In this document: one piece after another, positions 602-25,696 of the stretch
Layout of the letters: the number at the start of each line of letters is the position of its first letter
How positions within the stretch are numbered: the first letter of the stretch is position 1
Sequence record: MZ475898.1
Length of the DNA: 64,000 nt
Strand: one strand, 5' to 3'
The notes under the pieces: model-generated
Database searches by the model: none
Seen by the model: the letters and a program-made list of their open reading frames with translations, nothing else
Told to the model about the DNA's origin: nothing
Translations under genes and position numbers: made by a program

Positions 602-1198
602 TTAGTACAGGATTACAGTGCCAGACTCAGGATTGTCGAAGGTAATCGTCAACTGGCTGGTGCTGTCATGCACGATAGACTTAGGCTGTACTTCGTTCGC
701 ACCTTGATAGATACGCACCGCAGGGTTATAACCGAGATTATGCACAACAACCCACGTAGCCAGATTCTCATAAGATGCAGTGAATGCAACGGTAGGAGTA
801 GGCAGACCTGACTCAACGCCAGACAACAGTACAGCAGTACCGGCCACGGCAGAAGGGAAGAGGACAACGATGTTGTTAGCATCATCAGCGTGAATTGAAG
901 ATGGCTGCACCACGTCACCATTCTCATCGTAGCACTGTACGATAGGCGTAGCGGTATTCATCTTGTGGTTAATCTCCCAACGAGACGAAGCGGTAGGCTG
1001 CGAGTAGCGAACCATAGTCATCTGTTGAGTTAATGGAACCCAGACAGGAACATCTTCGATAGACACGCAGAACATCAGACGCTTGTCCATGAAGATAGCC
1101 ATACCAGGCTTAGGGTTAAGAGGCCAGTCAGTCGCTACATCAAACGCGAAGTTAGCAAGTGAGCCAAACTCTAAATCAAGAGTCCCTAGGACTTTCAT
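602..1198 (-). CDS. Fibre/whisker protein with two WxIxHN-type domains
   Basis: 198 aa; AGGAGA SD; two internal repeats (WEINHKM...FPSAVAG, WVVVHNLG...FDNPESG). Confidence 0.75.
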   Translation of the reverse strand: MKVLGTLDLEFGSLANFAFDVATDWPLNPKPGMAIFMDKRLMFCVSIEDVPVWVPLTQQMTMVRYSQPTASSRWEINHKMNTATPIVQCYDENGDVVQPSSIHADDANNIVVLFPSAVAGTAVLLSGVESGLPTPTVAFTASYENLATWVVVHNLGYNPAVRIYQGANEVQPKSIVHDSTSQLTITFDNPESGTVILY

Positions 1199-1218
1199 AA
1201 ATCTTTCTCCTGAGAGGT

Positions 1219-1248
1219 AAAAGGGGCAGGCAGAAGCCCACCCCTTTT
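1219..1248 (-). terminator. Intrinsic terminator
   Basis: Minus strand GGGGTGGGC-TTCT-GCCTGCCCC followed by TTTT, downstream of the 539-aa gene. Confidence 0.7.
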
Positions 1249-1261
1249 GTTTGTGTCGTTA

Positions 1262-2881
1262 TTACTCAGCCGGAGTATAAGCGTTCGCACCAGTAACGAA
1301 TGCGATTGCCACTTTCTTCTCGGTGGTCAGTTCAACACGCAGCGTGTTAGCGTCAACAAACACGACCTCATCAGGGATGATCTGATAGCCGGTATCATCA
1401 ACGACGGTAACGGTACCGTATTTGACGCCTGCATTGTGTGCGAAGGTGTGAGTGGTATTAGCCACGTCACCGCTTGCAGTTTTGTCGTACTGGTACAGCT
1501 TAGCAGCAGAACCGCTTGAGCCAGCAGCAATCGCATCGTCAACATATTTCTTGCTGACAACAGACTCATCAACCAGCGCTTCGGTGCCGGTCAGAGTAAG
1601 GGCTTCGACAGCGCCGCCTTCACCAGCGATGAAACCAGCGCTTTTTAAGGCGTCTTGGTCCACGATGATTTTGCTGTTGGTAGTGTCCTGTTTCAGGCCA
1701 GTACCCAGAGCAGCGCCTGCAATCTGCGCATAACCAACGCCACCATCAGTGATTGCCAGACCATCAGCAGTACGTGACAGAGTAGCGCCGTCCAGTTTAA
1801 CGCGAGTAGCACCAGCGTTATCTTCCAGGCCACCAGCAGCGTCCAGCTTAGCAGTAACAGCGTTGCTAGTGATTTCGATACCAGCGCCAGTAACCACGTT
1901 AACGACGTTCGAAACTTTCTCCAAACCATTGCCTGGGTTGAAGTCAGAAGCGCCGCCGAAGGTAGTCCACTGAGTAGCGTCGAAGCGACGGTATTCTTTG
2001 ATGCTCTTAACCCACGTTACAGCGCCACCAGCTTCGCTATCAGCAGGGTTGAAGACAACAACGAACGCAGTGCCGTTGTAGCGCACGATAGCGTTATCAA
2101 CCAGGCCGCTGATAGTACCGAAGTTCGGGTTAACAGTGTCTGCATCGAGGATGATGTACTGCTTACCGTTCTCCAGTACAGGGTCGAGGGTGCCGTCAGT
2201 CTGAATGTCATCAGAATCGTGCAGCCAGTCGATACCAGCGATGGCGTTGTCAATGTCGATCTTACGAGCGGCATCGTTCGCGTTTGCTGGCGCGGCCAGG
2301 TTGGTGATGGTGTTACCGTCAGCGTTCAGGTCACCAGTCAGAACACCAGCGCCTGCATCCAGCTTACCTGCCAGTGCAGTTTCGTTGGCGTCAGATTTGT
2401 TCTTGACTGCGGTGATCTGAGTCTGGATAGAAGAGGTAGCACCCTTCAAATAACCCAGTTCAGTTGCAGTAACATCGCTGGTTTCCAGAGTGCTATCAGC
2501 GCCTGCAAACACAACGGCGTTTTCAGTCAGGCCAGACAGTTTATCCTGCTTACCACTGATAACGGTTTCAACGTGCTTCTTACTAACAGCAGCGTTATCT
2601 TCTGACGCGCTCTGGTCTGGACCAGACAGCAGCAGATCGGCAGTCATGGCTACGGTACCGTCAGCGAGGATAACACCCTCTACAGAACCACCGCCTTCAC
2701 CCAGCTCTTTGATTGCCGTACCGTCGAAGTATTTATACTTCTTGTCTGTGGTGTTATACCACATGCGCCCTTCCTGTGCGGCAACCAAGTCACCTACAGC
2801 AGGGTCAGCAGCAAGTTGTTCCGGACGGAAGTTCTTGAGCTGGGCACCTAACATCAGTTCAATATTACCAGTACGCATCAT
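1262..2881 (-). CDS. Fibre/whisker structural protein
   Basis: 539 aa Gly/Ala/Asp-rich; AVSKKHVE, AARKIDID and VVSKKYVD fibre motifs; C-terminal HN-type domain; AGGAGA SD. Confidence 0.75.
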   Translation of the reverse strand: MMRTGNIELMLGAQLKNFRPEQLAADPAVGDLVAAQEGRMWYNTTDKKYKYFDGTAIKELGEGGGSVEGVILADGTVAMTADLLLSGPDQSASEDNAAVSKKHVETVISGKQDKLSGLTENAVVFAGADSTLETSDVTATELGYLKGATSSIQTQITAVKNKSDANETALAGKLDAGAGVLTGDLNADGNTITNLAAPANANDAARKIDIDNAIAGIDWLHDSDDIQTDGTLDPVLENGKQYIILDADTVNPNFGTISGLVDNAIVRYNGTAFVVVFNPADSEAGGAVTWVKSIKEYRRFDATQWTTFGGASDFNPGNGLEKVSNVVNVVTGAGIEITSNAVTAKLDAAGGLEDNAGATRVKLDGATLSRTADGLAITDGGVGYAQIAGAALGTGLKQDTTNSKIIVDQDALKSAGFIAGEGGAVEALTLTGTEALVDESVVSKKYVDDAIAAGSSGSAAKLYQYDKTASGDVANTTHTFAHNAGVKYGTVTVVDDTGYQIIPDEVVFVDANTLRVELTTEKKVAIAFVTGANAYTPAE

Positions 2882-2902
2882 GTTCTCCTAGTGCGTGGGG
2901 GA

Positions 2903-3646
2903 TTAGAAAAACTGACCGTCACATTCACCAAGACTGCAACGCAGTTCCTGGTATGCAGCGATCCGTTGTTCAATTACATTAATAAACTTGTCATCAATAT
3001 CATACTTCACACGAAGCGGAGCATCATATCCTTCTAAGAGGCCGTGACGTCGATACGCATCTGCACGGAGCAGCGGTGCGCTAACGTGAGCACGTTCCAT
3101 AATGCTTAAATCTATCTTATCGGCATAGATGAACGGCCGCTCTCGTTTACACAGAAGGTAATCGATCTCGTGTAAATTAAAGAGTGTGAAATTCATATAG
3201 CCAATAATGAACTCCGCAATCAAACGAAAACTATCTGCCATATCTGCACTCAGATTGTGAGCGAGTATGGGTTCTATGTGTGGTTGCAGTTCAGTACGCA
3301 TGTCGTACCAAGCTTCACACAGAACAGCAGGGAAGTCTTCAGGGTGAGCGGCCATAAGCCCCATCACCCCTTTCTCCATATCTGCGAATGAGCTTAAAAG
3401 ATTAGCGGTATCTTCAGGTGTTTCAATACCGCGACCCGTTGAAATGAACTGGCATTCAATTTCTCTCAACCAAGACTCGGACGCAGATAGGTATTGGAGA
3501 AGTGTCTCCCGAGCGCCAGCCGAAAACTCATGTCGGTCAGACTCAAGAGCCTGGTCCAACAAGAAGGCTTTAGCTTTGTAGAAGTCACTATAGCGCTCAG
3601 CGGTAAAGCGGCGGAACGCTATATTATTTCTCAAATAGCCTATCAT
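2903..3646 (-). CDS. Hypothetical alpha-helical cytoplasmic protein
   Basis: 247 aa; ATGA overlap with the upstream stop suggests translational coupling. Confidence 0.7.
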   Translation of the reverse strand: MIGYLRNNIAFRRFTAERYSDFYKAKAFLLDQALESDRHEFSAGARETLLQYLSASESWLREIECQFISTGRGIETPEDTANLLSSFADMEKGVMGLMAAHPEDFPAVLCEAWYDMRTELQPHIEPILAHNLSADMADSFRLIAEFIIGYMNFTLFNLHEIDYLLCKRERPFIYADKIDLSIMERAHVSAPLLRADAYRRHGLLEGYDAPLRVKYDIDDKFINVIEQRIAAYQELRCSLGECDGQFF

Positions 3647-4146
3647 CGCAATTTCCTCAGATCATTCGACTCCGAAGCGCCTAAGCCGGGCGGAGCCGTA
3701 TACAACGAACTGGAGAGGCTCTGCAATCTTAGCCCTAGCTTCTCTAGCTCATGTTGATTACCATCAAGACGGCCTAACACTTCACGCATTAGGTCAACTG
3801 ACTCCTGATGGTCACGGGACTGCTGTGATATAATCCGCTCAAACCGCTGAACTGCTCGAAGAACTGAGTTCAATCCCTCTTTAAGATCTATATTGTCGAC
3901 CTGCGTGGTTTCCGAAAACTCATTAAGGGCTTTGAGGACCTGCGCTAGTTCTGCTTCTAGTGACTCACCATCGAGCACTACGGGATTTGCTTCTAACTCG
4001 GCTAACTTCTCTTTGACCCGTTCATAGTCCTGCATGTCGGGAATGACTTTCCACCAGTAAAAGCCAGCTCCTGCAATGAGAAGAACTACTGACAGGACAG
4101 TTGCGAAGTTGGACGCAAGCACTTGTCCTAGTATTTCAGCCCACAT
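3643..4146 (-). CDS. Membrane protein, N-terminal TM helix plus coiled coil (possible lysis/spanin-like)
   Basis: 167 aa; hydrophobic FATVLSVVLLIAGAGFYWW followed by heptad-rich region. Confidence 0.65.
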   Translation of the reverse strand: MWAEILGQVLASNFATVLSVVLLIAGAGFYWWKVIPDMQDYERVKEKLAELEANPVVLDGESLEAELAQVLKALNEFSETTQVDNIDLKEGLNSVLRAVQRFERIISQQSRDHQESVDLMREVLGRLDGNQHELEKLGLRLQSLSSSLYTAPPGLGASESNDLRKLR

Positions 4147-4151
4147 TTCTT

Positions 4152-4436
4152 CTAACCCTTACAGGCTCGGTCATTGAGTTCGATAATAACTCGCTGTGCG
4201 CCTGGTTCGTTTACATCAGTGGTTTTATACGTGTGCGCCATCTTTGGCTTGAACTCTAAGCAGCTCTGTCCATATCGTCCGTCAACGACGCAGATAGCAG
4301 ACAGGCAGCTCACATCTTCCTTGAGGATTCTCGATTCAGGATCTGGGTTGACACTTCTAACGGCCGTGACAATAAGCGACACAAAGGCCAAGGCAATGCC
4401 AACCAAAATCACAATCTTGATTTTCCCGGCGTTCAT
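4152..4436 (-). CDS. Small membrane-anchored protein with four Cys
   Basis: 94 aa; TM IVILVGIALAFVSLIVTAV; four Cys in the C-terminal domain. Confidence 0.65.
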   Translation of the reverse strand: MNAGKIKIVILVGIALAFVSLIVTAVRSVNPDPESRILKEDVSCLSAICVVDGRYGQSCLEFKPKMAHTYKTTDVNEPGAQRVIIELNDRACKG

Positions 4437-4467
4437 TTCGCTCTATCCAGTTGAATTTTGATAGGAG

Positions 4468-4475
4468 AAATTAGC
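4468..4475 (-). promoter_or_regulatory. Candidate late promoter motif GCTAATTT
   Basis: Intergenic, ~32 nt upstream of ATG 4436; same octamer lies upstream of five other genes. Confidence 0.5.
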
Positions 4476-4497
4476 GACCGCGCAGATCCTAAACGGG

Positions 4498-5535
4498 TTA
4501 TTCATCCAATACTCCACTTATATCTTGGAACATGTTTTTATACACGAGGCTACCTCCAAGTTTGTCCAGTCGTTCAATCGAAACATACATGTGCGGTTCT
4601 GTATTCACCTGTGCCCACTTGTTGTCTGTACTCAGGTTTTCCAAAGAAGGAATAAGAACGATGCTCAAGTTATCAGAAGCCCTAACGAAAGCCACATCGA
4701 TATGATTCTTATTGATTCGAATGATGTATCGGTTGATTGCGTCCAAACCAACCGTGCGATTGAACTCTACATCACTGACTGTATTCACCAAACTAATAAG
4801 GAAGCCTTTCGGGCGACTGTTTATGTCGAACAGCGAACTCTTCAACTCAGAGAGGGTAGTAGCCGAGAAGTGTTGAACATCATGGCCCTTGCCTCTTAGA
4901 CACTCACCCAAGATGCGACTCGATTCAATGTGCGCGGTGTTGTCATCACGCATGATATAAATCGGTGCACCTCTGTTGTATGTGCGCTCGGTAATCTGCT
5001 GTATCAGGTCGCATGTAGGCTCCGTAACAGTAGACAGGCCTTTATACGCAATAACAAACTTGTCCTTGTACAGGTCGTAAATCTCAGGCGGCATGTACTT
5101 CATGTAATCATCATCAAGGCTCAAAATCAATCGAGGCTTAACGAGAGGAATCACAAGCTGCACAGACCGCAGAGCGTCCTTGTACTCCGTGTCCGATAGC
5201 ACACGGTTTATAGGTAGGTACTGCACAGTCACATACGGGTCAGAGCCTGTATCGACGATAGAGCGAACGGCTGTGCTGCCTACGTTAGGACCTGCGGAGA
5301 ACTGAGTGATAATCATCAAACTGTTTTGGCCTAAGCCACCGCCACCAGCAACTGTAGTAGCACTACCATCTGCATTCTGGACTGTCTTAGAGCGCGTCAG
5401 CGTTGGCGCTACTCGGTCGTCTCGTCCGTTATCGGCATATACATTAACTGCGCAACACCAGAGACAGCTTCCAAGAACGTAAGCAGCAATACGTTGTCGG
5501 GATCTGCGTCTGCCGGGTTGACGGTGTCCGGCCAT
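4498..5535 (-). CDS. Exported periplasmic-binding-protein-like (type 1, ABC_sub_bind-like) protein
   Basis: 345 aa; AAAGGAG SD before ATG 5535; signal-peptide-like N-terminus; PRLILSLDDD, IYIMRDDN, TLSELKSSL and YVSIERLDKLG resemble PBP1 sensor-domain motifs. Confidence 0.55.
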   Translation of the reverse strand: MAGHRQPGRRRSRQRIAAYVLGSCLWCCAVNVYADNGRDDRVAPTLTRSKTVQNADGSATTVAGGGGLGQNSLMIITQFSAGPNVGSTAVRSIVDTGSDPYVTVQYLPINRVLSDTEYKDALRSVQLVIPLVKPRLILSLDDDYMKYMPPEIYDLYKDKFVIAYKGLSTVTEPTCDLIQQITERTYNRGAPIYIMRDDNTAHIESSRILGECLRGKGHDVQHFSATTLSELKSSLFDINSRPKGFLISLVNTVSDVEFNRTVGLDAINRYIIRINKNHIDVAFVRASDNLSIVLIPSLENLSTDNKWAQVNTEPHMYVSIERLDKLGGSLVYKNMFQDISGVLDE

Positions 5536-6233
5536 AATACTTCTCCTTTCTCGTCAGTGACATAAGGAATACCGGCGCCTTTACCCAATCCATGACGTAA
5601 GGCCCATACGGTGTCGGCATTCTCTTGAACGAACACAAGACCATGCACCTGTGCTTTATCCCCTGTCTGCTCAAGCGCTGTCACACGACTATCGAGTAAC
5701 TGCGTTTGCGATTGGAGAGCACGAATCGATGCAAGGTTGGAGTTAACACGCGTGTTCATATTGTTGAACATGGTGAAGAAGCTGTTGTTCATCGCAGTAC
5801 GGACGCTGTCCGTGTACGACTTAGGAATCAGCTCATTGCTGTCAAACGTTGTTGCGCCCGGTCGAACGAATACCTTACCTTGAAGTGTACCGCCGCTCGC
5901 ACTGATAATCTGAGGTGCAGGCAGATCAGCTGCATCCCAAGTCTGAACAGTGTTCATCACAGTAGCGTAGTCCGTTTCCTCCTGCCACGTATTCTTGTAC
6001 GGGCTGGTGGCTGTTTTAGACTTGCGGCGTAACACTTTCTTGTAGCTGGCGTTGGCACCATCAGCAATGATCCAGAGACCGTTCAGAGGGAATGTATGCG
6101 TAACAGGTTCAGCAAACGCCAGTATGATAATGACGTCCGCTCCCACCTTATACACAATATCATTCGACGCCGAAAGTCCCTGCTGTTGCGCAAGGCTTAC
6201 GAGCGTGTCCACATAGTTAGTCAACTGGCTCAT
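5409..6233 (-). CDS. Fibre protein with coiled coil and C-terminal HN-type domain
   Basis: 274 aa; coiled coil NTRVNSNLASIRALQSQTQLLDSRVTALE; C-terminal WALRHGLG...FLEAVSG. Confidence 0.7.
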   Translation of the reverse strand: MSQLTNYVDTLVSLAQQQGLSASNDIVYKVGADVIIILAFAEPVTHTFPLNGLWIIADGANASYKKVLRRKSKTATSPYKNTWQEETDYATVMNTVQTWDAADLPAPQIISASGGTLQGKVFVRPGATTFDSNELIPKSYTDSVRTAMNNSFFTMFNNMNTRVNSNLASIRALQSQTQLLDSRVTALEQTGDKAQVHGLVFVQENADTVWALRHGLGKGAGIPYVTDEKGEVLWPDTVNPADADPDNVLLLTFLEAVSGVAQLMYMPITDETTE

Positions 6234-6693
6234 CCGAAACTCCTAAGGTTTTTAGAATTGAAGAACTTCTATCGGAGAAGGCTTTTGCAATTGACTTAGC
6301 AGCAGCCTTATCGATAACGATTGTGCTGATAACGCCTTTGGTGTTGCATACGATTGTTTGAGGAGCGTAGTCAACACAAGCCAAGGCGAATAGCAGATGA
6401 TTACCGAGTTCACCGCTGATACAAACGTCTACGTCGAGGTCAGGCACGTAAACGTTCTGGTTAATCTCAGAAATAAACTGCGCCAGCGCAACGGGATCAA
6501 ACTTAGGAGGCGCTGTATCGTATTCCGCAATCAAGTCAATCTGTTTGGTTGCGGGATCGTATTCAAATGCGTTAATGTCCGAGATGATACGACCAAAGAG
6601 TTCGTTGCTTACTTCAATGCAATACTCATCAGACTTCTCACGGACGCGACCAACTACCTTGTTAGTCGCTGGGTTGATACGAATGATTGGCAT
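6217..6693 (-). CDS. Possible fibre assembly chaperone
   Basis: 158 aa directly downstream of a collagen fibre gene; call is by position and size. Confidence 0.45.
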   Translation of the reverse strand: MPIIRINPATNKVVGRVREKSDEYCIEVSNELFGRIISDINAFEYDPATKQIDLIAEYDTAPPKFDPVALAQFISEINQNVYVPDLDVDVCISGELGNHLLFALACVDYAPQTIVCNTKGVISTIVIDKAAAKSIAKAFSDRSSSILKTLGVSDEPVD

Positions 6694-6695
6694 AA

Positions 6696-7517
6696 TTAGT
6701 CGCCCTCTGCACTATACCAGAAGTCCCAGCCGACAACGTTTGTGCCAGTAGACTTAATGGTGAAGCCACCCAACAGGGCGTTCTCGTTCATCGCACTTGT
6801 ACCATCCAGATTATAGAGCTGGAAGGTCCGAGATTGATTGGTTGCAGTATTGACGAACGTGATTTGCACAGACACACAGCGGTTGATGAACGGGCTGTTG
6901 AAGATAACGTTAATCGTATCAGTAGTGGATGTATTCACCACACGACCAAAGTTCTTCGTGTAACCAGTGTTCAGATCGCGGTCGCTACCAATCCATGCGT
7001 TAGGAATAGGCTGACCTGTGATAGGGTCAAGCGCTTGTGCTACGAGATACTCATTGATAGCAGCATCGCGTCCTGCATTACCAGTAGGACCAGTTGGGCC
7101 TGTAGGACCCACACCACCTGTGTTACCTGTAGCGCCGACAGGGCCTGTGTTACCAGTAGGACCTTGACGGCCACGCTGACCACGAGGGCCAGGACAACCG
7201 TCTTCACCATCAGCACCATCACGACCATCAGCACCAGGCAGGCCACGTAGACCGTCTTTACCCTGCTTACCTTCCTTGCCTGACTTCAACTGGTCAGCAG
7301 TAGGCAGGCCAGGCACGGTGCTCTGACTACCGTCTGGCCATACAATAGTAAGCGTACCACTCACTGGATCGAACTGTACGCCTTGTGATCCCGGAATGTT
7401 AGCTGCCTCTGTCGGGTCAATAAACGCAACAGAGTTCAGCGTTTGTTTGCCGAGAACTTTACCGACAGGAAATGCACCGCCATCGATTAGTCCCGGACTT
7501 ATTTTCTGCAAAGACAT
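6696..7517 (-). CDS. Collagen-like fibre protein
   Basis: 273 aa; 24 consecutive G-X-Y triplets (7065-7280); C-terminal beta-rich domain. Confidence 0.85.
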   Translation of the reverse strand: MSLQKISPGLIDGGAFPVGKVLGKQTLNSVAFIDPTEAANIPGSQGVQFDPVSGTLTIVWPDGSQSTVPGLPTADQLKSGKEGKQGKDGLRGLPGADGRDGADGEDGCPGPRGQRGRQGPTGNTGPVGATGNTGGVGPTGPTGPTGNAGRDAAINEYLVAQALDPITGQPIPNAWIGSDRDLNTGYTKNFGRVVNTSTTDTINVIFNSPFINRCVSVQITFVNTATNQSRTFQLYNLDGTSAMNENALLGGFTIKSTGTNVVGWDFWYSAEGD

Positions 7518-7527
7518 GGGCTAGCTC

Positions 7528-7731
7528 CTAACCAGTCAGTGTTGTCCAATCAGGTTGGCCTGATTGACCCGCTTCGGGATTCTTAACTTTCGTGTTGTTG
7601 ATTGTCATACGAATCCAACGCACAGTACCGTCAGAATCCTGCCAGCGAATCTTCGTTCCACCGTATGCTAAATTAGCTACCCATCTGTCTCTGCTAGGGT
7701 CTTTGAAAGCAAGACGTGCATAAGCAGGCAT
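7528..7731 (-). CDS. Small Trp-repeat fibre-associated protein
   Basis: 67 aa; AAGGAG SD; three (K/R)...W motifs similar to the N-terminus of the 673-aa ORF. Confidence 0.65.
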   Translation of the reverse strand: MPAYARLAFKDPSRDRWVANLAYGGTKIRWQDSDGTVRWIRMTINNTKVKNPEAGQSGQPDWTTLTG

Positions 7732-7740
7732 AAGTTCTCC

Positions 7741-10614
7741 TTAGATTTCGTCAGGTTCCCAACACAGAATAGGACGGCGATACACTTGAAATACGCCAGT
7801 AGGTGCGTAGCTTGAGCTAAGGTATTCTTTAGCGTTTGTACTGAGGCTACGTTCTGACGTAAGCAACTGTTGCCTGTTGTGCGTCCACTGACAACGACCA
7901 CAAGACTCTGCTTCGATACCCGCATCTGAGTCCCAACCAGGCACGTCGAATGTTTTGTTCCATCCGTTGAAGTGGTGAGTAGACACCGCTCCGTTGCCTG
8001 TTGCACACAGCACCATGTACTGATAGTCAGACTCGAAGTAGATAGGCACGTTACGGCCTGTAGGGATAGAAGGACCATTAGCGTTATACGTCAATTGCCA
8101 ACCAGTACGGTCTGCTGAGCCTGTAGACATGAACAACGGTCTACGGATAATCATCATGATACCGTTCTGCGTTCCGTTGTCGCTAGTCTTGGTGCAGTAC
8201 GCATTGCAGCGCAGCGCACGGTCAACAGTGAACAACGTACTGTTGGAGAAGTCAGCATTGTACAGGTTAGCCGCCCACTGAGGTAAGTTAGCAGCTTCTG
8301 GTACAATGAAGTGACGCTCTGCCAGTTCCAGATCACCGTAGCGGTCATAAGCAAACACGATATACTCGTAGCCTGCATCGATCTGAATGTTATGTCCTTG
8401 AGAACCCACGCCAGTCCACTTCCAAACAATCTGCCAGTCGTTAGTATCACGTCCAGGCGTATCGTTTATCAGGCCGTACTTGCGTTCGTATATCTGCCAT
8501 ACTCGGGAGCCACCAGTTGCAGCAAAGTACAAGCTGCCTGGATTAGAGCGGTCACCACCACAACGAGTAAGATGGTCGGGTCCTGCTTCGTTGTAAGCAC
8601 TGGCTCCGCCTACACCGTCAAACATTTCCCAGTTCATCATCAAGTGAGAGGTGCACAACTCATTCGGTCCGCTATCATCCGTTGTCGTAACAAGATATTC
8701 GTACTGGTCAGCAAACGGATAGTAGACAGTCTCTGTTCCTGCCATAGCAACACGACGAACCCAATCGTGTGACTGCACTTTAGGTACAGGGAAGCAAGGG
8801 TTAGTCACAGACACGACGAAACTTTTAGTCTCGTACATCGGCAGCTTTTTGAAGCGGTTATCACGAATCGTCACCGTGTGCTTCATGCCGTAAGTCTGTG
8901 CACCGTCCATACCGCCTAGCACTTTGTAGTAGCTGAGATGCGCACTCTTGGTGCTCTCATACAGACCAGTGATACCTAAAGACATTGCGCTGTTGCGGTC
9001 AGTACCACAGCAATACTGATTGCCGTAGCTGTCATACGCGAAGCCCACAGAGAAGTAGCTATCAGGGTCAGACGACTGAGGTCCGTAGTACATCTCAGTA
9101 GGCGCATTGCCCTCACCAACACCAGGCAGGCCAAAGCAGCAATAGCAACCGCGATACTGATACTGTCCGCCTTCGTACACGCGACGAGAAGCACCTATGC
9201 GATACATAGCACCAGCAAGTCCACCTTGAGTACGGTTAACGTTTGCTGTGTCATAGGAAACGACATAAACAAAGTGGTCGGCGCCAATCGAGTTCAGGAA
9301 CGCAGCCATGTTAGCAGCATTCGTCGTGCCCGGCGCAGTACCTTCGGCAGAAACGTGAATGTCATACGCTCTGCGATCTACAAGCACTTGGTCGGACTTG
9401 CGAATCTTGTACACGTTGAAGCCGCGAGAATCTCGGTAGTAAACGCCATTCACATACGTGTAACCAACATCGCCTGTGTCAAGCGTGCGCTGATAACCTA
9501 CGATGTGGCTGAACACGCTACTACGCGCTTGCAGACTCGCACCGTTATCGTTCGACCAGTTGACGGACACATCACCAGCAGCCATACGTGCAGCCCAATC
9601 ATCAGGCTTGTATGGGTAAGTGGTCACGTCAAAGTTAACGCCGTACGCACTGCCTATTTCTACGCAGCACGGGTCACGATAAATGATCTCTGGGTCAAGA
9701 ATAACATCGTCAGGAATATCAACTTGGCCACAGTACATCTGACGCCACACACCAGCTTGACCGCCGATAGAACCCGGGCCAGCAGCACCTGCGCCAGAGT
9801 TGAACTGGTAAGCAGCAGACACACGGTAGTTCTTTTGGTTGCTTAACTGTGGAACGTTCAGCCAGCCTACGTGGTCACCAAAAGCATTGATGGACTTAGA
9901 ACGCGCAGCCTGAGTAGCGACAACGTTAGCAGCACCATTGCTTGTGATACCAAGAGGACTAAAGATAGCGTTGAAGTTAACGTTACCCTCGTACGGGCCT
10001 TTCTGGAGCACAATCAGGCTAACGCCGTTACGGTGCGCTTCACGCAAGGCATTGAGCATTGCAGTAGGCATAGACTGACCGCTAGACGACAGCAGCAGCA
10101 TAACGCAGGACCATTGCTGGAAATACTTGTAGGTTCCGTCGTAACCGTAAGCACCAGCATTGATTTCATCCCACGTATGAGACAGCATATCAAGAGGCAT
10201 ACGCTCAAGATAATGAACAAGCTGTCCCCATGACTCCATTGCAGACTCATCATCCACAGAAGCACCATCACTAATGACCAGCATCGTTGAGCCAGCAGTG
10301 ATGTTAGAGTTATAGGCACGCTCGGTCAGAAACTGGCGCAGCGCACCCATGTTGTTAATTGTGGCATTGCGATAGTTACCCATCCAGCCGTAGCCGTCAG
10401 TAACCATTGGACTATCACTGCGAATGAAGCTACCGTTCATATACACAGAACCGTAACCGCAAACATACGCGAGAGCATGACCATCAACAACAAAGGATGT
10501 GTAGCGATTGCTATCAACGCCCATCGCATCAACAGCAGCTACGGAGCCATCACCTACACCGCCAGTAAAGACAGGAGTAATGCCTCGTGCATACAAGCAA
10601 CTTTGTTGCAGCAT
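7741..10614 (-). CDS. Large virion/fibre protein with ILEI/PANDER-like domain
   Basis: 957 aa; SRGFNVYKI...AAFLNSIGADHFVYVVSYD...YRGCYCCFG matches the ILEI pattern; three C-terminal W...YEY repeats. Confidence 0.7.
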   Translation of the reverse strand: MLQQSCLYARGITPVFTGGVGDGSVAAVDAMGVDSNRYTSFVVDGHALAYVCGYGSVYMNGSFIRSDSPMVTDGYGWMGNYRNATINNMGALRQFLTERAYNSNITAGSTMLVISDGASVDDESAMESWGQLVHYLERMPLDMLSHTWDEINAGAYGYDGTYKYFQQWSCVMLLLSSSGQSMPTAMLNALREAHRNGVSLIVLQKGPYEGNVNFNAIFSPLGITSNGAANVVATQAARSKSINAFGDHVGWLNVPQLSNQKNYRVSAAYQFNSGAGAAGPGSIGGQAGVWRQMYCGQVDIPDDVILDPEIIYRDPCCVEIGSAYGVNFDVTTYPYKPDDWAARMAAGDVSVNWSNDNGASLQARSSVFSHIVGYQRTLDTGDVGYTYVNGVYYRDSRGFNVYKIRKSDQVLVDRRAYDIHVSAEGTAPGTTNAANMAAFLNSIGADHFVYVVSYDTANVNRTQGGLAGAMYRIGASRRVYEGGQYQYRGCYCCFGLPGVGEGNAPTEMYYGPQSSDPDSYFSVGFAYDSYGNQYCCGTDRNSAMSLGITGLYESTKSAHLSYYKVLGGMDGAQTYGMKHTVTIRDNRFKKLPMYETKSFVVSVTNPCFPVPKVQSHDWVRRVAMAGTETVYYPFADQYEYLVTTTDDSGPNELCTSHLMMNWEMFDGVGGASAYNEAGPDHLTRCGGDRSNPGSLYFAATGGSRVWQIYERKYGLINDTPGRDTNDWQIVWKWTGVGSQGHNIQIDAGYEYIVFAYDRYGDLELAERHFIVPEAANLPQWAANLYNADFSNSTLFTVDRALRCNAYCTKTSDNGTQNGIMMIIRRPLFMSTGSADRTGWQLTYNANGPSIPTGRNVPIYFESDYQYMVLCATGNGAVSTHHFNGWNKTFDVPGWDSDAGIEAESCGRCQWTHNRQQLLTSERSLSTNAKEYLSSSYAPTGVFQVYRRPILCWEPDEI

Positions 10615-24378: not shown

Positions 24379-24401
24379 TGTTATTCTCCTCTGTTAGGCA
24401 C

Positions 24402-24409
24402 AAATTAGC
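24402..24409 (-). promoter_or_regulatory. Candidate late promoter motif GCTAATTT
   Basis: 24 nt upstream of the PAAR ATG, just after a terminator. Confidence 0.55.
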
Positions 24410-24425
24410 TTTATACGCGACAGAA

Positions 24426-24460
24426 ACAAAAACGGGCAGCCTAATGGCCACCCGGTTCTT
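24426..24460 (-). terminator. Intrinsic terminator
   Basis: Minus strand CGGGTGGC-CATTAG-GCTGCCCG followed by TTTTTGTTT. Confidence 0.65.
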
Positions 24461-24477
24461 GCGCTTGGATTTTGTCG

Positions 24478-24639
24478 CTATTCCCACATCCCTCGAACGT
24501 GTGCCACTGTGCCCTCAAGCACGTAGCCGGAATGAATAGAGGAAGGATAGACTGCCTGAGGTCCTTCCTGTAACGATAACAACCGACCAAGCATTGCGAT
24601 TGCTATCAGCGACAATATGAGCAGTACAATCGTCATCAT
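24478..24639 (-). CDS. Small membrane protein (53 aa, below ORF-track cutoff)
   Basis: Manual translation MMTIVLLILSLIAIAMLGRLLSLQEGPQAVYPSSIHSGYVLEGTVAHVRGMWE; purine-rich upstream; followed by a terminator. Confidence 0.45.
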   Translation of the reverse strand: MMTIVLLILSLIAIAMLGRLLSLQEGPQAVYPSSIHSGYVLEGTVAHVRGMWE

Positions 24640-24739
24640 ATCGTCGTTACTCTTCTTTTGGCCGAACGGTATTGCATGGTTTGATCAGATTACTCCGCTG
24701 CCTATCGTCCACGATCACTTAGGTTTCAGTTTCTTCATC

Positions 24740-25690
24740 TCTTTACCGCCTGCGCTGCGGTCAAGCCGCACACCCTGCACACGAATCTAACACAAAGGGG
24801 CGGAAGAACCTTTATGCTCGAAACATGCACCTGGCGAAGGAGGCCACGCATCGGTGATCTGCTGGTGTTAACACACTTTTAAGGCCTTTCTTTTGTGCAC
24901 CATTCAAGAGACAGGGCCACCAGCTAGTGATCTCTTTAAGGTATCGCACTGACTTGTGAACAAGTCACGGGTTGAAAACTATACACTTCCATATGCGCAT
25001 CGGGAGAAACGCATAAGGCTGATGCACAGCTTTGACTAAGAAGGATTGCGCCCGTCGCCCGACTTCACTTGGGTATCGACAATCGTTCTCTCTTACTCCC
25101 TTGAGTACAGCGCAAGGAACACTGAGTCAATGAGTAGTCTGCGGGTGTTACTCACTAGAGGGTGAAAGCCTTTTAGATTCTTTATTCTGCGCAGCACCTT
25201 AATGGACTTGAATCGCCCGCTGGAGTATCCAATAAGGCCCTCTCGGTTAGGCACCTTGCTGCACAGAAAACCCGGGGAGTACGTTACCATATAAAACGAC
25301 TCTCCCCAATGCATACCAGAGCGACTTGATATGCATCAGGCAGTGAACGTTTGCAGAAGTTCAACTGCTTTGCTTCCCGCAGAACTAGAGCCACACCGTT
25401 GAGTATACGGTCCACAGTAGTTACATGCCTAGAGGATATTGCCTTGGAGTTTATGTCCTATGGAATAACCGGGCTCGTCGCGTCGGTGCCACAGCAATAT
25501 TCTATCATGTGGTGCTGGGGTTGTTCCCCACATTATGCGATTGCTCGCAACCAGCTGGAGGTTTGCGTCCGATGAAAAGAATAACTAAGACGCAGATGAG
25601 CTTTTCAGAAAAAACGGCACACCAAGAAAATTGGCTAAACTCAGTGTGCGTATAGATATTACTATCTACAATTTTTATTTACAGATTTTT
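24740..25690. ncRNA. Candidate large structured non-coding RNA, class unidentified
   Basis: Only long gap in a gene-dense window; more than 12 short stems, nested helices, GNRA loops and a possible pseudoknot; no credible ORF; strand unresolved. Confidence 0.55.
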
Positions 25691-25696
25691 CTGAGA

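Follow-up and report, generated by a model that had tools for sequence, protein, structure and literature searches.

A candidate membrane-spanning sensing cassette with an exported binding-protein-like subunit in the fibre gene cluster of a jumbo Erwinia phage

To our knowledge, few ways have been described by which virulent phages can sense conditions outside the cytoplasm. Type-1 periplasmic binding proteins (PBPs) are known to serve as co-sensors of membrane receptors, as in LuxP-LuxQ, TorT-TorS and ChvE-VirA. A viral counterpart of a solute-binding protein is found in cyanophage PstS, an auxiliary metabolic gene product homologous to a host transporter component and acting with host permeases. 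Exclusion genes located beside receptor-binding genes, such as Llp of T5 and Cor of phi80-like phages, encode single small proteins. In the lysis inhibition system of T4, as outlined in two reports, a periplasmic antiholin (RI), a holin (T) and a cytoplasmic antiholin (RIII) are involved (PMC8385771, PMC11413866). Here, a cassette of four genes, p1 to p4, is described from a 64,000-nucleotide stretch of sequence record MZ475898.1, referred to below as the window, which derives from Erwinia phage pEa_SNUABM_25 (100% identity), a 263-kb jumbo myovirus related to SNUABM_7, the type of Snuvirus. The four products are read as a single sensing or relay complex spanning the inner membrane and made late together with virion parts, a reading to which we give somewhat less than an even chance. 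By analogy, the cassette would come closest in its working to transmembrane sensors that depend on PBPs, with a conceptual likeness to the T4 RI/T/RIII trio as well; it is a member of neither. Literature searches found no paper describing p1-p4.

The open reading frame (ORF) list of the window contains the four consecutive minus-strand ORFs that an earlier note, made from the letters of the window, had described. They stand in the order p1-p2-p3-p4 and have lengths of 345, 94, 167 and 247 aa. These genes, their subdivisions and their two neighbours are as follows.

4498..5535, minus strand: p1, 345 aa in its long form, very probably exported and PBP-like by its model; stop codon included
5434..5535, minus strand: p1 residues 1-34, predicted signal peptide, from the sequence, the -3/-1 residues of relatives and the resampling test
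5317..5433, minus strand: p1 residues 35-73, variable linker, with low model confidence and failing alignment across genera
4501..5316, minus strand: p1 residues 74-345, predicted two-lobed alpha/beta domain, from alignment, model and Foldseek
4152..4436, minus strand: p2, 94 aa, predicted single-pass membrane protein with its N-terminus inside
3643..4146, minus strand: p3, 167 aa, predicted single-pass membrane protein with its N-terminus outside and its C-terminus inside
2903..3646, minus strand: p4, 247 aa, predicted cytoplasmic helical protein
5409..5535, minus strand: dual-coding overlap of the 3' end of p0 with the 5' end of p1 in different frames, 127 nt, from ORFs, relatives and resampling
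5409..6233, minus strand: p0, upstream neighbour, 274-aa fibre-like protein
1262..2881, minus strand: downstream neighbour, 539-aa virion fibre-like protein

Public records of nearly all relatives place the start of p1 at an internal Met, which gives a protein of about 272 aa with no signal peptide, and the corresponding family of unknown function, PHROG 31505, likewise begins at this Met. The signal-peptide-like N-terminus first noticed in the window is nonetheless real and selected, and the long 345-aa form is the genuine one. In 10 of 10 genomes outside Salmondvirus, which represent five named genera and one unclassified Yersinia phage, the upstream ATG occupies the same position, and all ten have a GGAG, GAGG or AAGG site 5' of it. 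This ATG, its Shine-Dalgarno site and the hydrophobic core of the signal are all contained in the 3' end of p0. The two Salmondvirus genomes use a GTG start preceded by GGAG. Across 10 of 10 relatives p1 overlaps the upstream gene p0 by 124-133 nt, compared with 127 nt in the window. In Yoloswag and SNUABM_5, no start codon is available close to where the p1 conserved domain begins, and the starts annotated in these two records cut off 20-30 conserved residues. Selection on the overlap was assessed in seven genomes by resampling, the synonymous codons of p0 being reshuffled with the p0 protein sequence held fixed. Between 0.5 and 3.6% of resamplings per genome left the p1 frame free of stops, and at most 0.05% in each of the seven genomes left it both stop-free and as hydrophobic as observed. 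This test took the place of a pairwise comparison of synonymous sites in p0 inside and outside the overlap, which gave a weak contrast (0.39 vs 0.44). Judged from this resampling, the second frame across the overlap is under selection.

In the predicted signal of p1, a basic n-region leads into a hydrophobic core of about 15-19 aa, and the residues at -3 and -1 are small; in the window, V-Y-A precedes the likely cleavage site, and the small residues are kept in relatives. A lipobox-like L-G-S-C lies within the core and is conserved in relatives as L-G-[AS]-C, so that lipoprotein processing is possible, with the p1 domain periplasmic either way. An exhaustive profile search yielded 29 full-length remote homologues of p1, 25 of which carry a classical N-terminal hydrophobic signal, and in most remote homologues this is a plain signal peptide without Cys. 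On a rule-based call, p1 is thus very probably exported to the periplasm. At distant syntenic loci the signal-bearing p1 begins at the p0 stop, which suggests that only the Erwinia/Dickeya/Yersinia clade has the long overlap, through what looks like overprinting. Residues 35-73 cannot be aligned between genera, yet they are always in frame.

The fold of the exported domain has been approached through an AlphaFold2 model based on 22 family sequences. Its mean predicted local distance difference test (pLDDT) score is 68, with residues 1-69 disordered at pLDDT <50, and residues 73-345 form a clean alternation of beta and alpha elements in which the C-terminal lobe reaches pLDDT values near 90 and the N-lobe 43-78. 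A Foldseek comparison of the model with the PDB returned 207 matches at E<=0.001. The best 50 of them are mostly type-1 PBP/Venus-flytrap (VFT) proteins, with probabilities of 0.97-1.0, alignments of 255-371 columns and E-values of about 2e-5. Matches include MSMEG_1712, AmiC, the Leu/Ile/Val-, ribose- and galactose-binding proteins and PnrA, as well as CaSR, mGluR, taste receptors, the ANP receptor and a Trp-binding protein (3lft) deposited as 'ABC domain'; binders of sugars, amino acids and amides are among the best structural matches. The motifs PRLILSLDDD, IYIMRDDN, TLSELK and YVSIERLDKLG, from which the earlier note had argued for a type-1 PBP, are all present in p1. The family alignment brings out the conserved polar motifs DDDY, RDDN..H.E and N.KH.D, which come after beta strands in the model, a placement that matches the usual position of cleft residues and is suggestive only.

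Sequence comparisons place p1 outside the PBP families. No Pfam or NCBIfam match was obtained for p1, including Peripla_BP, ABC_sub_bind, ANF_receptor and Bmp, and family profiles searched against PDB sequences found no PBP. A fold search of BFVD retrieved solely uncharacterised members of the same family as p1. A GH5 cellulase assignment was considered and rejected, as the broad-profile matches (E 0.007-0.07) cover one beta-alpha-beta unit and the context of the catalytic Glu is absent. The proposal of a type-1 PBP is therefore retained for the two-lobed model and its best Foldseek matches and dropped as a sequence-family assignment: a PBP-like two-lobed fold is the best structural reading of p1, inferred from a model of moderate quality, and family membership is not accepted. 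When compared to the PBP co-sensors, p1 shows the likeness of a predicted exported two-lobed alpha/beta protein of about 270 aa that is encoded beside membrane proteins and finds its best matches in that fold class. It differs in belonging to no PBP sequence family and in its partners: instead of a kinase, a chemoreceptor or an ABC (ATP-binding cassette) permease, these comprise a novel helical protein and two single-pass proteins of small size; the cassette is also phage-encoded and occurs in phage contigs only.

The second gene encodes, as had been recognised, a transmembrane (TM) protein with four Cys. The TM segment of p2 spans residues 8-26, and behind it lies a predicted periplasmic domain some 65 aa long. 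Among homologues, very distant ones included, four Cys follow the TM segment in 10 of 10, in the pattern C-x4-C ... C ... C, and Lys and Arg (K/R) are confined to its N side in 10 of 10. These features fit an anchor with its N-terminus in the cytoplasm (N-in) and a disulfide-bonded periplasmic domain. No match to p2 was found in Pfam, PHROG, NCBIfam or PADLOC, and a profile of 10 homologues searched against PDB sequences at E<=10 gave nothing relevant. For the third gene, described in the earlier note as encoding a TM plus coiled-coil protein, the sequence of p3 agrees: an acidic N-tail leads to a single TM segment, after which come an invariant Pro and a long, charged, K/R-rich helical stretch. 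In 8 of 9 homologues no K/R occurs ahead of the TM segment, and 1-5 K/R occur just after it. Under the positive-inside rule, from which the topologies of both proteins were derived, this charge pattern places the coiled coil of p3 in the cytoplasm, with an N-out/C-in orientation. The protein belongs to PHROG 31730 ('membrane protein'), and its family profile retrieved from the PDB weak coiled-coil-type matches alone. Resemblance of p3 to chemoreceptors was rejected, the matches to cytoplasmic domains of methyl-accepting chemotaxis proteins (E ~1e-4) being ranked under a designed coiled coil and probably compositional.

The last gene is coupled to the third, as had been proposed: the p3 stop and p4 start overlap as ATGA, an arrangement by which p4 is judged to be translationally coupled to p3. 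The model of p4 (pLDDT 92, predicted template modelling score 0.88) shows five long helices and a small alpha/beta C-terminal part, so that a soluble helical bundle is predicted with confidence. A fold search gave no structural relative (best E 0.43), and no Pfam, NCBIfam or PDB sequence match was found. The label 'ABC transporter' attached to p4 in PHROG and RefSeq is unsupported, given that the protein has no ABC domain and is modelled as a helical bundle without structural relative. This bears on the possibility that p1 is a solute-binding protein feeding a host ABC importer and so raising the supply of nutrients, as has been described for phage-encoded phosphate-binding proteins. The PBP-like fold and export of p1 would suit such auxiliary uptake, as would the PHROG category of p3 and p4 ('moron, auxiliary metabolic gene and host takeover'), and cyanophage PstS offers a parallel in that a virus encodes an exported subunit with a binding-protein fold. 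The parallel ends there, since no cellular homologue of p1 is detectable and its three partners, to which it is locked, are phage proteins. With p1 lacking sequence similarity to any solute-binding family and being strictly linked to three non-transporter proteins, with no ABC permease candidate in the cassette (p2 and p3 are each single-pass) and with late expression leaving little time for a nutritional benefit, an uptake role is considered highly improbable.

A more direct part in lysis has also to be considered, in which the set would act on the envelope at the end of infection as holin/antiholin-like or spanin-like proteins. The size and topology of p2, with a hydrophobic segment at the N-terminus and a periplasmic domain behind it, are those of a small periplasmic antiholin, and to this extent the likeness to T4 RI put forward in the earlier note holds; it is one of architecture only, as p2 has no match in Pfam, PHROG or PDB sequences. 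The T4 RI/T/RIII system and the cassette have in common that small phage proteins are distributed across the periplasm, the inner membrane and the cytoplasm and could read a periplasmic cue. They differ in that no relative of RI, T or RIII was found in Pfam, PHROG or PDB searches with p2-p4, in that p3 is predicted to face the cytoplasm whereas the T4 holin is N-in/C-out, and in that the cassette has an additional PBP-like subunit and does not stand beside the endolysin/holin candidate in this lineage. A superficial similarity of p3 to i-spanins, with a TM segment and a helical region, is offset by its predicted orientation, which is the reverse of that of i-spanins and of the T4-type holin. 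As regards the lipoprotein partner of a two-component spanin, p1 has the conserved L-G-[AS]-C in its signal core, although most remote homologues carry signal peptides without Cys and p1 is far larger than the o-spanins known. Furthermore, p2 has no lipobox, and no holin, antiholin or spanin match was found in Pfam, PHROG or the PDB.

The position of the lysis genes is informative in this respect. The relative SNUABM_7 shares 99.8% identity with the window over the cassette; its annotated endolysin gene gp201 lies at ~169 kb and its cassette at ~66 kb. In this segment (L019 42604-43579; NC_061451 169.1-170.1 kb), gp201 is flanked by gp202, whose product of 112 aa has three predicted TM segments and is plausibly a holin. 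With the endolysin and holin candidate at such a distance, the cassette is not the core lysis cassette of this phage. In favour of a lysis effector, there is no evident spanin pair adjoining the SNUABM_7 endolysin, and one remote relative of the cassette lies directly upstream of an M15 peptidase endolysin. In view of the reversed p3, the holin candidate elsewhere and the absence of recognisable lysis domains, a direct effector role in lysis is regarded as very unlikely.

Conservation of the neighbourhood, which the earlier note had proposed as a check, has proved consistent: all four genes occur together in every relative examined. They co-occur in the same order and between the same fibre-like genes in 12 phage genomes from seven named genera and one unclassified Yersinia phage, among them Snuvirus, Alexandravirus (with Dickeya phage AD1), Sasquatchvirus Y3, Yoloswagvirus, Rivsvirus, Salmondvirus and Yersinia phage fHe-Yen9-02. 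The same order has been observed at three metagenomic loci (L015, L017 and L024), and at L024, which was left out of profile building, hidden Markov model matches were obtained for p1 (6e-14), p2 (1.5e-17), p3 (2e-13) and p4 (5e-44). Beyond this jumbo clade, p1 is absent from cultured phages (50,697 genomes searched). A survey of 185,579 species-representative bacterial and archaeal genomes gave a single p1 match, a full-length protein of 62% identity on a 7-kb phage-like contig (L031, JAVWLC010000123.1) in a metagenome-assembled genome of 'Raoultibacter sp.', almost certainly a mis-binned phage contig. Export of p1 being very probable, a two-lobed fold being predicted for it and the four genes co-occurring in relatives, none of these three points speaks against the original proposal.

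More distant sets of similar architecture have also been detected. Their p1-like proteins match at E ~1e-5 to 1e-3, chiefly over the C-lobe. In these remote sets the first gene encodes a signal-bearing protein of 318-344 aa, the second a single-pass protein of 89-121 aa, the third a protein of 175-232 aa in which an acidic N-tail precedes a single TM segment, with Pro next to this in most cases and then a helical region, and the fourth a soluble Cys-rich protein of 287-310 aa. The profiles of p2, p3 and p4 did not detect the remote sets, so that the equivalence is architectural and not proven. On contigs of uncultured T4-like phages the remote set comes directly after a tail-tube (gp19-like) gene (L020, L027 and L029). 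In L029 (5392-12077), the only contig long enough to show it, a portal (gp20-like) gene lies downstream past three further genes. A tblastn search of the remote T4-like variant against cultured phages gave no match. One remote lineage has a polytopic membrane protein in fourth position, with the M15 peptidase endolysin directly after it. It has also been observed that the remote T4-like set is followed by a gene for a TnsA-like nuclease, a sign that the set may be mobile or may occupy a hot spot of insertion.

Such placement inside late structural clusters, namely the fibre cluster in jumbo phages and the interval from tube to portal in T4-like contigs, could indicate a morphogenetic factor, that is, a membrane-anchored platform or chaperone at the inner membrane that helps in the assembly of tail fibres ('hairs') or of further parts of the virion. 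Amino-acid conservation of p1-p4 is similar to that of the neighbouring structural genes, which would agree with this. Virion assembly, however, is cytoplasmic, and an exported subunit and a disulfide-bonded periplasmic domain would have no obvious role in it; moreover, the confinement of p1 to the jumbo clade among the cultured genomes searched, none of which has the remote variant, implies that most myoviruses assemble without p1. As weaker evidence, the Y3 record marks the neighbouring fibre as a virion protein and the cassette products not. An assembly function is thus held to be quite unlikely.

The same location within the fibre cluster throughout the jumbo clade recalls the exclusion genes found beside receptor-binding genes in other phages, and superinfection exclusion or receptor masking has accordingly to be weighed, with periplasmic and membrane proteins altering or occupying an envelope component used by incoming phages or by progeny re-adsorbing to debris. 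Over long range p1 is the least conserved of the four proteins (26-61% identity) and p4 the most (49-72%), as would be expected if p1 were tracking a host surface or periplasmic partner, and all the exposed parts are predicted to face the periplasm. T5 Llp and Cor share with the cassette that envelope-located products are encoded within a fibre or receptor-binding cluster. They are, however, single small lipoproteins or membrane proteins, whereas the cassette has four proteins including a cytoplasmic one, and neither this partner nor a coiled coil would be needed for exclusion. Remote sets are not beside fibre genes, the analogous T4-like set lying between tail-tube and portal genes, and the cassette belongs to a late operon, although exclusion would be of greatest use early. 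An exclusion function is for these reasons judged unlikely.

The sensing complex is preferred to these alternatives, and the following model is proposed for it. The p1 protein would be exported via its Sec-type signal peptide, and its two-lobed periplasmic subunit would capture a small ligand or an envelope component. It would then dock onto the disulfide-bonded periplasmic domain of the N-in p2, which would pair with the N-out p3 within the membrane, and the cytoplasmic coiled coil of p3 would hold the helical p4. In this way a periplasmic state could be relayed to the cytoplasm, where it would most likely tune an end-of-infection decision, either lysis timing or a superinfection response. 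The contacts among p1-p4, the binding of a ligand and the output of the system are inferred. A sensing role with an end-of-infection output is favoured because the set is accessory, has a patchy distribution and seemingly moves as a unit into late operons, and because one set adjoins an endolysin. Placement in a late operon and the remote relative beside an endolysin are compatible with the earlier suggestion that such a module could control lysis timing or superinfection responses. Lysis timing as the specific output is held to be considerably less likely than the sensing complex as such.

Several observations weigh against this model. The model of p1 is only moderate (mean pLDDT 68) and has a weak N-lobe, TM-scores between p1 and PBPs are just 0.24-0.44 with root-mean-square deviations of 8-12 Å, and other two-lobed alpha/beta proteins (ATCase and amino-acid dehydrogenases) also match it. 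No PBP family match was obtained for 42 members of the p1 family, even at E<=10. For the topologies of p2 and p3, the positive-inside rule is the basis. Searches of all four proteins in Pfam, NCBIfam, PADLOC and PDB sequences yielded nothing of significance, and neither a kinase or cyclase nor an ABC or DNA-binding domain can be detected in p1-p4, so that no output module has been identified, and the endolysin and 3-TM holin candidate of SNUABM_7 are ~100 kb from the cassette.

In a bolder form of the proposal, which we regard as doubtful, the four genes would make up a viral sensory device able to move horizontally, in which a receptor of binding-protein fold in the periplasm of the infected cell is wired via two single-pass proteins to a novel cytoplasmic effector. 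If it were true, large virulent phages would respond late in infection to a cue from outside or from the envelope by adjusting lysis or release, and PBP-based signalling of purely viral origin, mechanistically unrelated to T4 lysis inhibition, would have been found. An exported binding-protein-like subunit tied to a cytoplasmic partner would open a new route to phage sensing, and the cassette occurs in large phages considered as a means of combating fire blight and soft rot. The annotation of about 50 public phage records is corrected by the present analysis, in that p1 is longer than recorded, overlaps a fibre gene and is very probably exported, and in that the labels 'ABC transporter' (p4) and 'HNH endonuclease' (p0) mislead. 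In addition, p1 and p4 represent two families without sequence-detectable characterised relatives, p4 also being without a structural relative, which makes them good structural targets.

As regards the immediate surroundings, the earlier claim that the cassette interrupts the fibre genes agrees with the presence of fibre-like genes on both sides, p0 upstream and the gene of the 539-aa protein downstream, the latter starting 22 nt past the p4 stop with an AGGAG site. The cassette's own promoter motif, which had also been claimed, could not be substantiated. Sigma-70-like matches in window positions 1000-8000 are at chance level (6 found vs 7.3 expected), the sole match beside the p1 start ends at the start codon, and no intergenic region precedes p1, because its start lies 127 nt within p0. 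A scan for promoters and terminators around the cassette gave no signal above chance, which, together with the tight gene spacing, indicates that the cassette is co-transcribed with the late fibre genes. The label 'HNH endonuclease' given to p0 in PHROG and RefSeq is not credible, and PHROG matches indicate a fibre-like protein: the N-terminal part matches one tail-protein PHROG and one unnamed PHROG, and the 539-aa neighbour has at its C-terminus the same beta domain (PHROG 21918) as p0. A domain of the PHROG 21918 type has also been seen by eye in neighbours of 198 aa and 73 aa.

Other features of the window were recorded in passing. A 273-aa fibre protein with a long collagen-like Gly-X-Y repeat tract is encoded at 6696-7517 on the minus strand, and the equivalent of its gene in the distant locus L015 has a Collagen Pfam match. 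Upstream of the fibre genes, a 957-aa protein is encoded at 7741-10614 (minus strand), for which the labels in relatives are inconsistent, naming either an ILEI domain or a T4 gp35-like protein. Within the tail/baseplate cluster, between a PAAR-like gene and a 587-aa gene, about 1.3 kb (24379-25696) contains no ORF of >=80 aa on either strand, has no annotation in any Snuvirus record and gives no Rfam or tRNA match. Other genera keep only the ends of this segment, and some annotate hypothetical proteins there; it may represent a decayed coding sequence or an unrecognised non-coding element.

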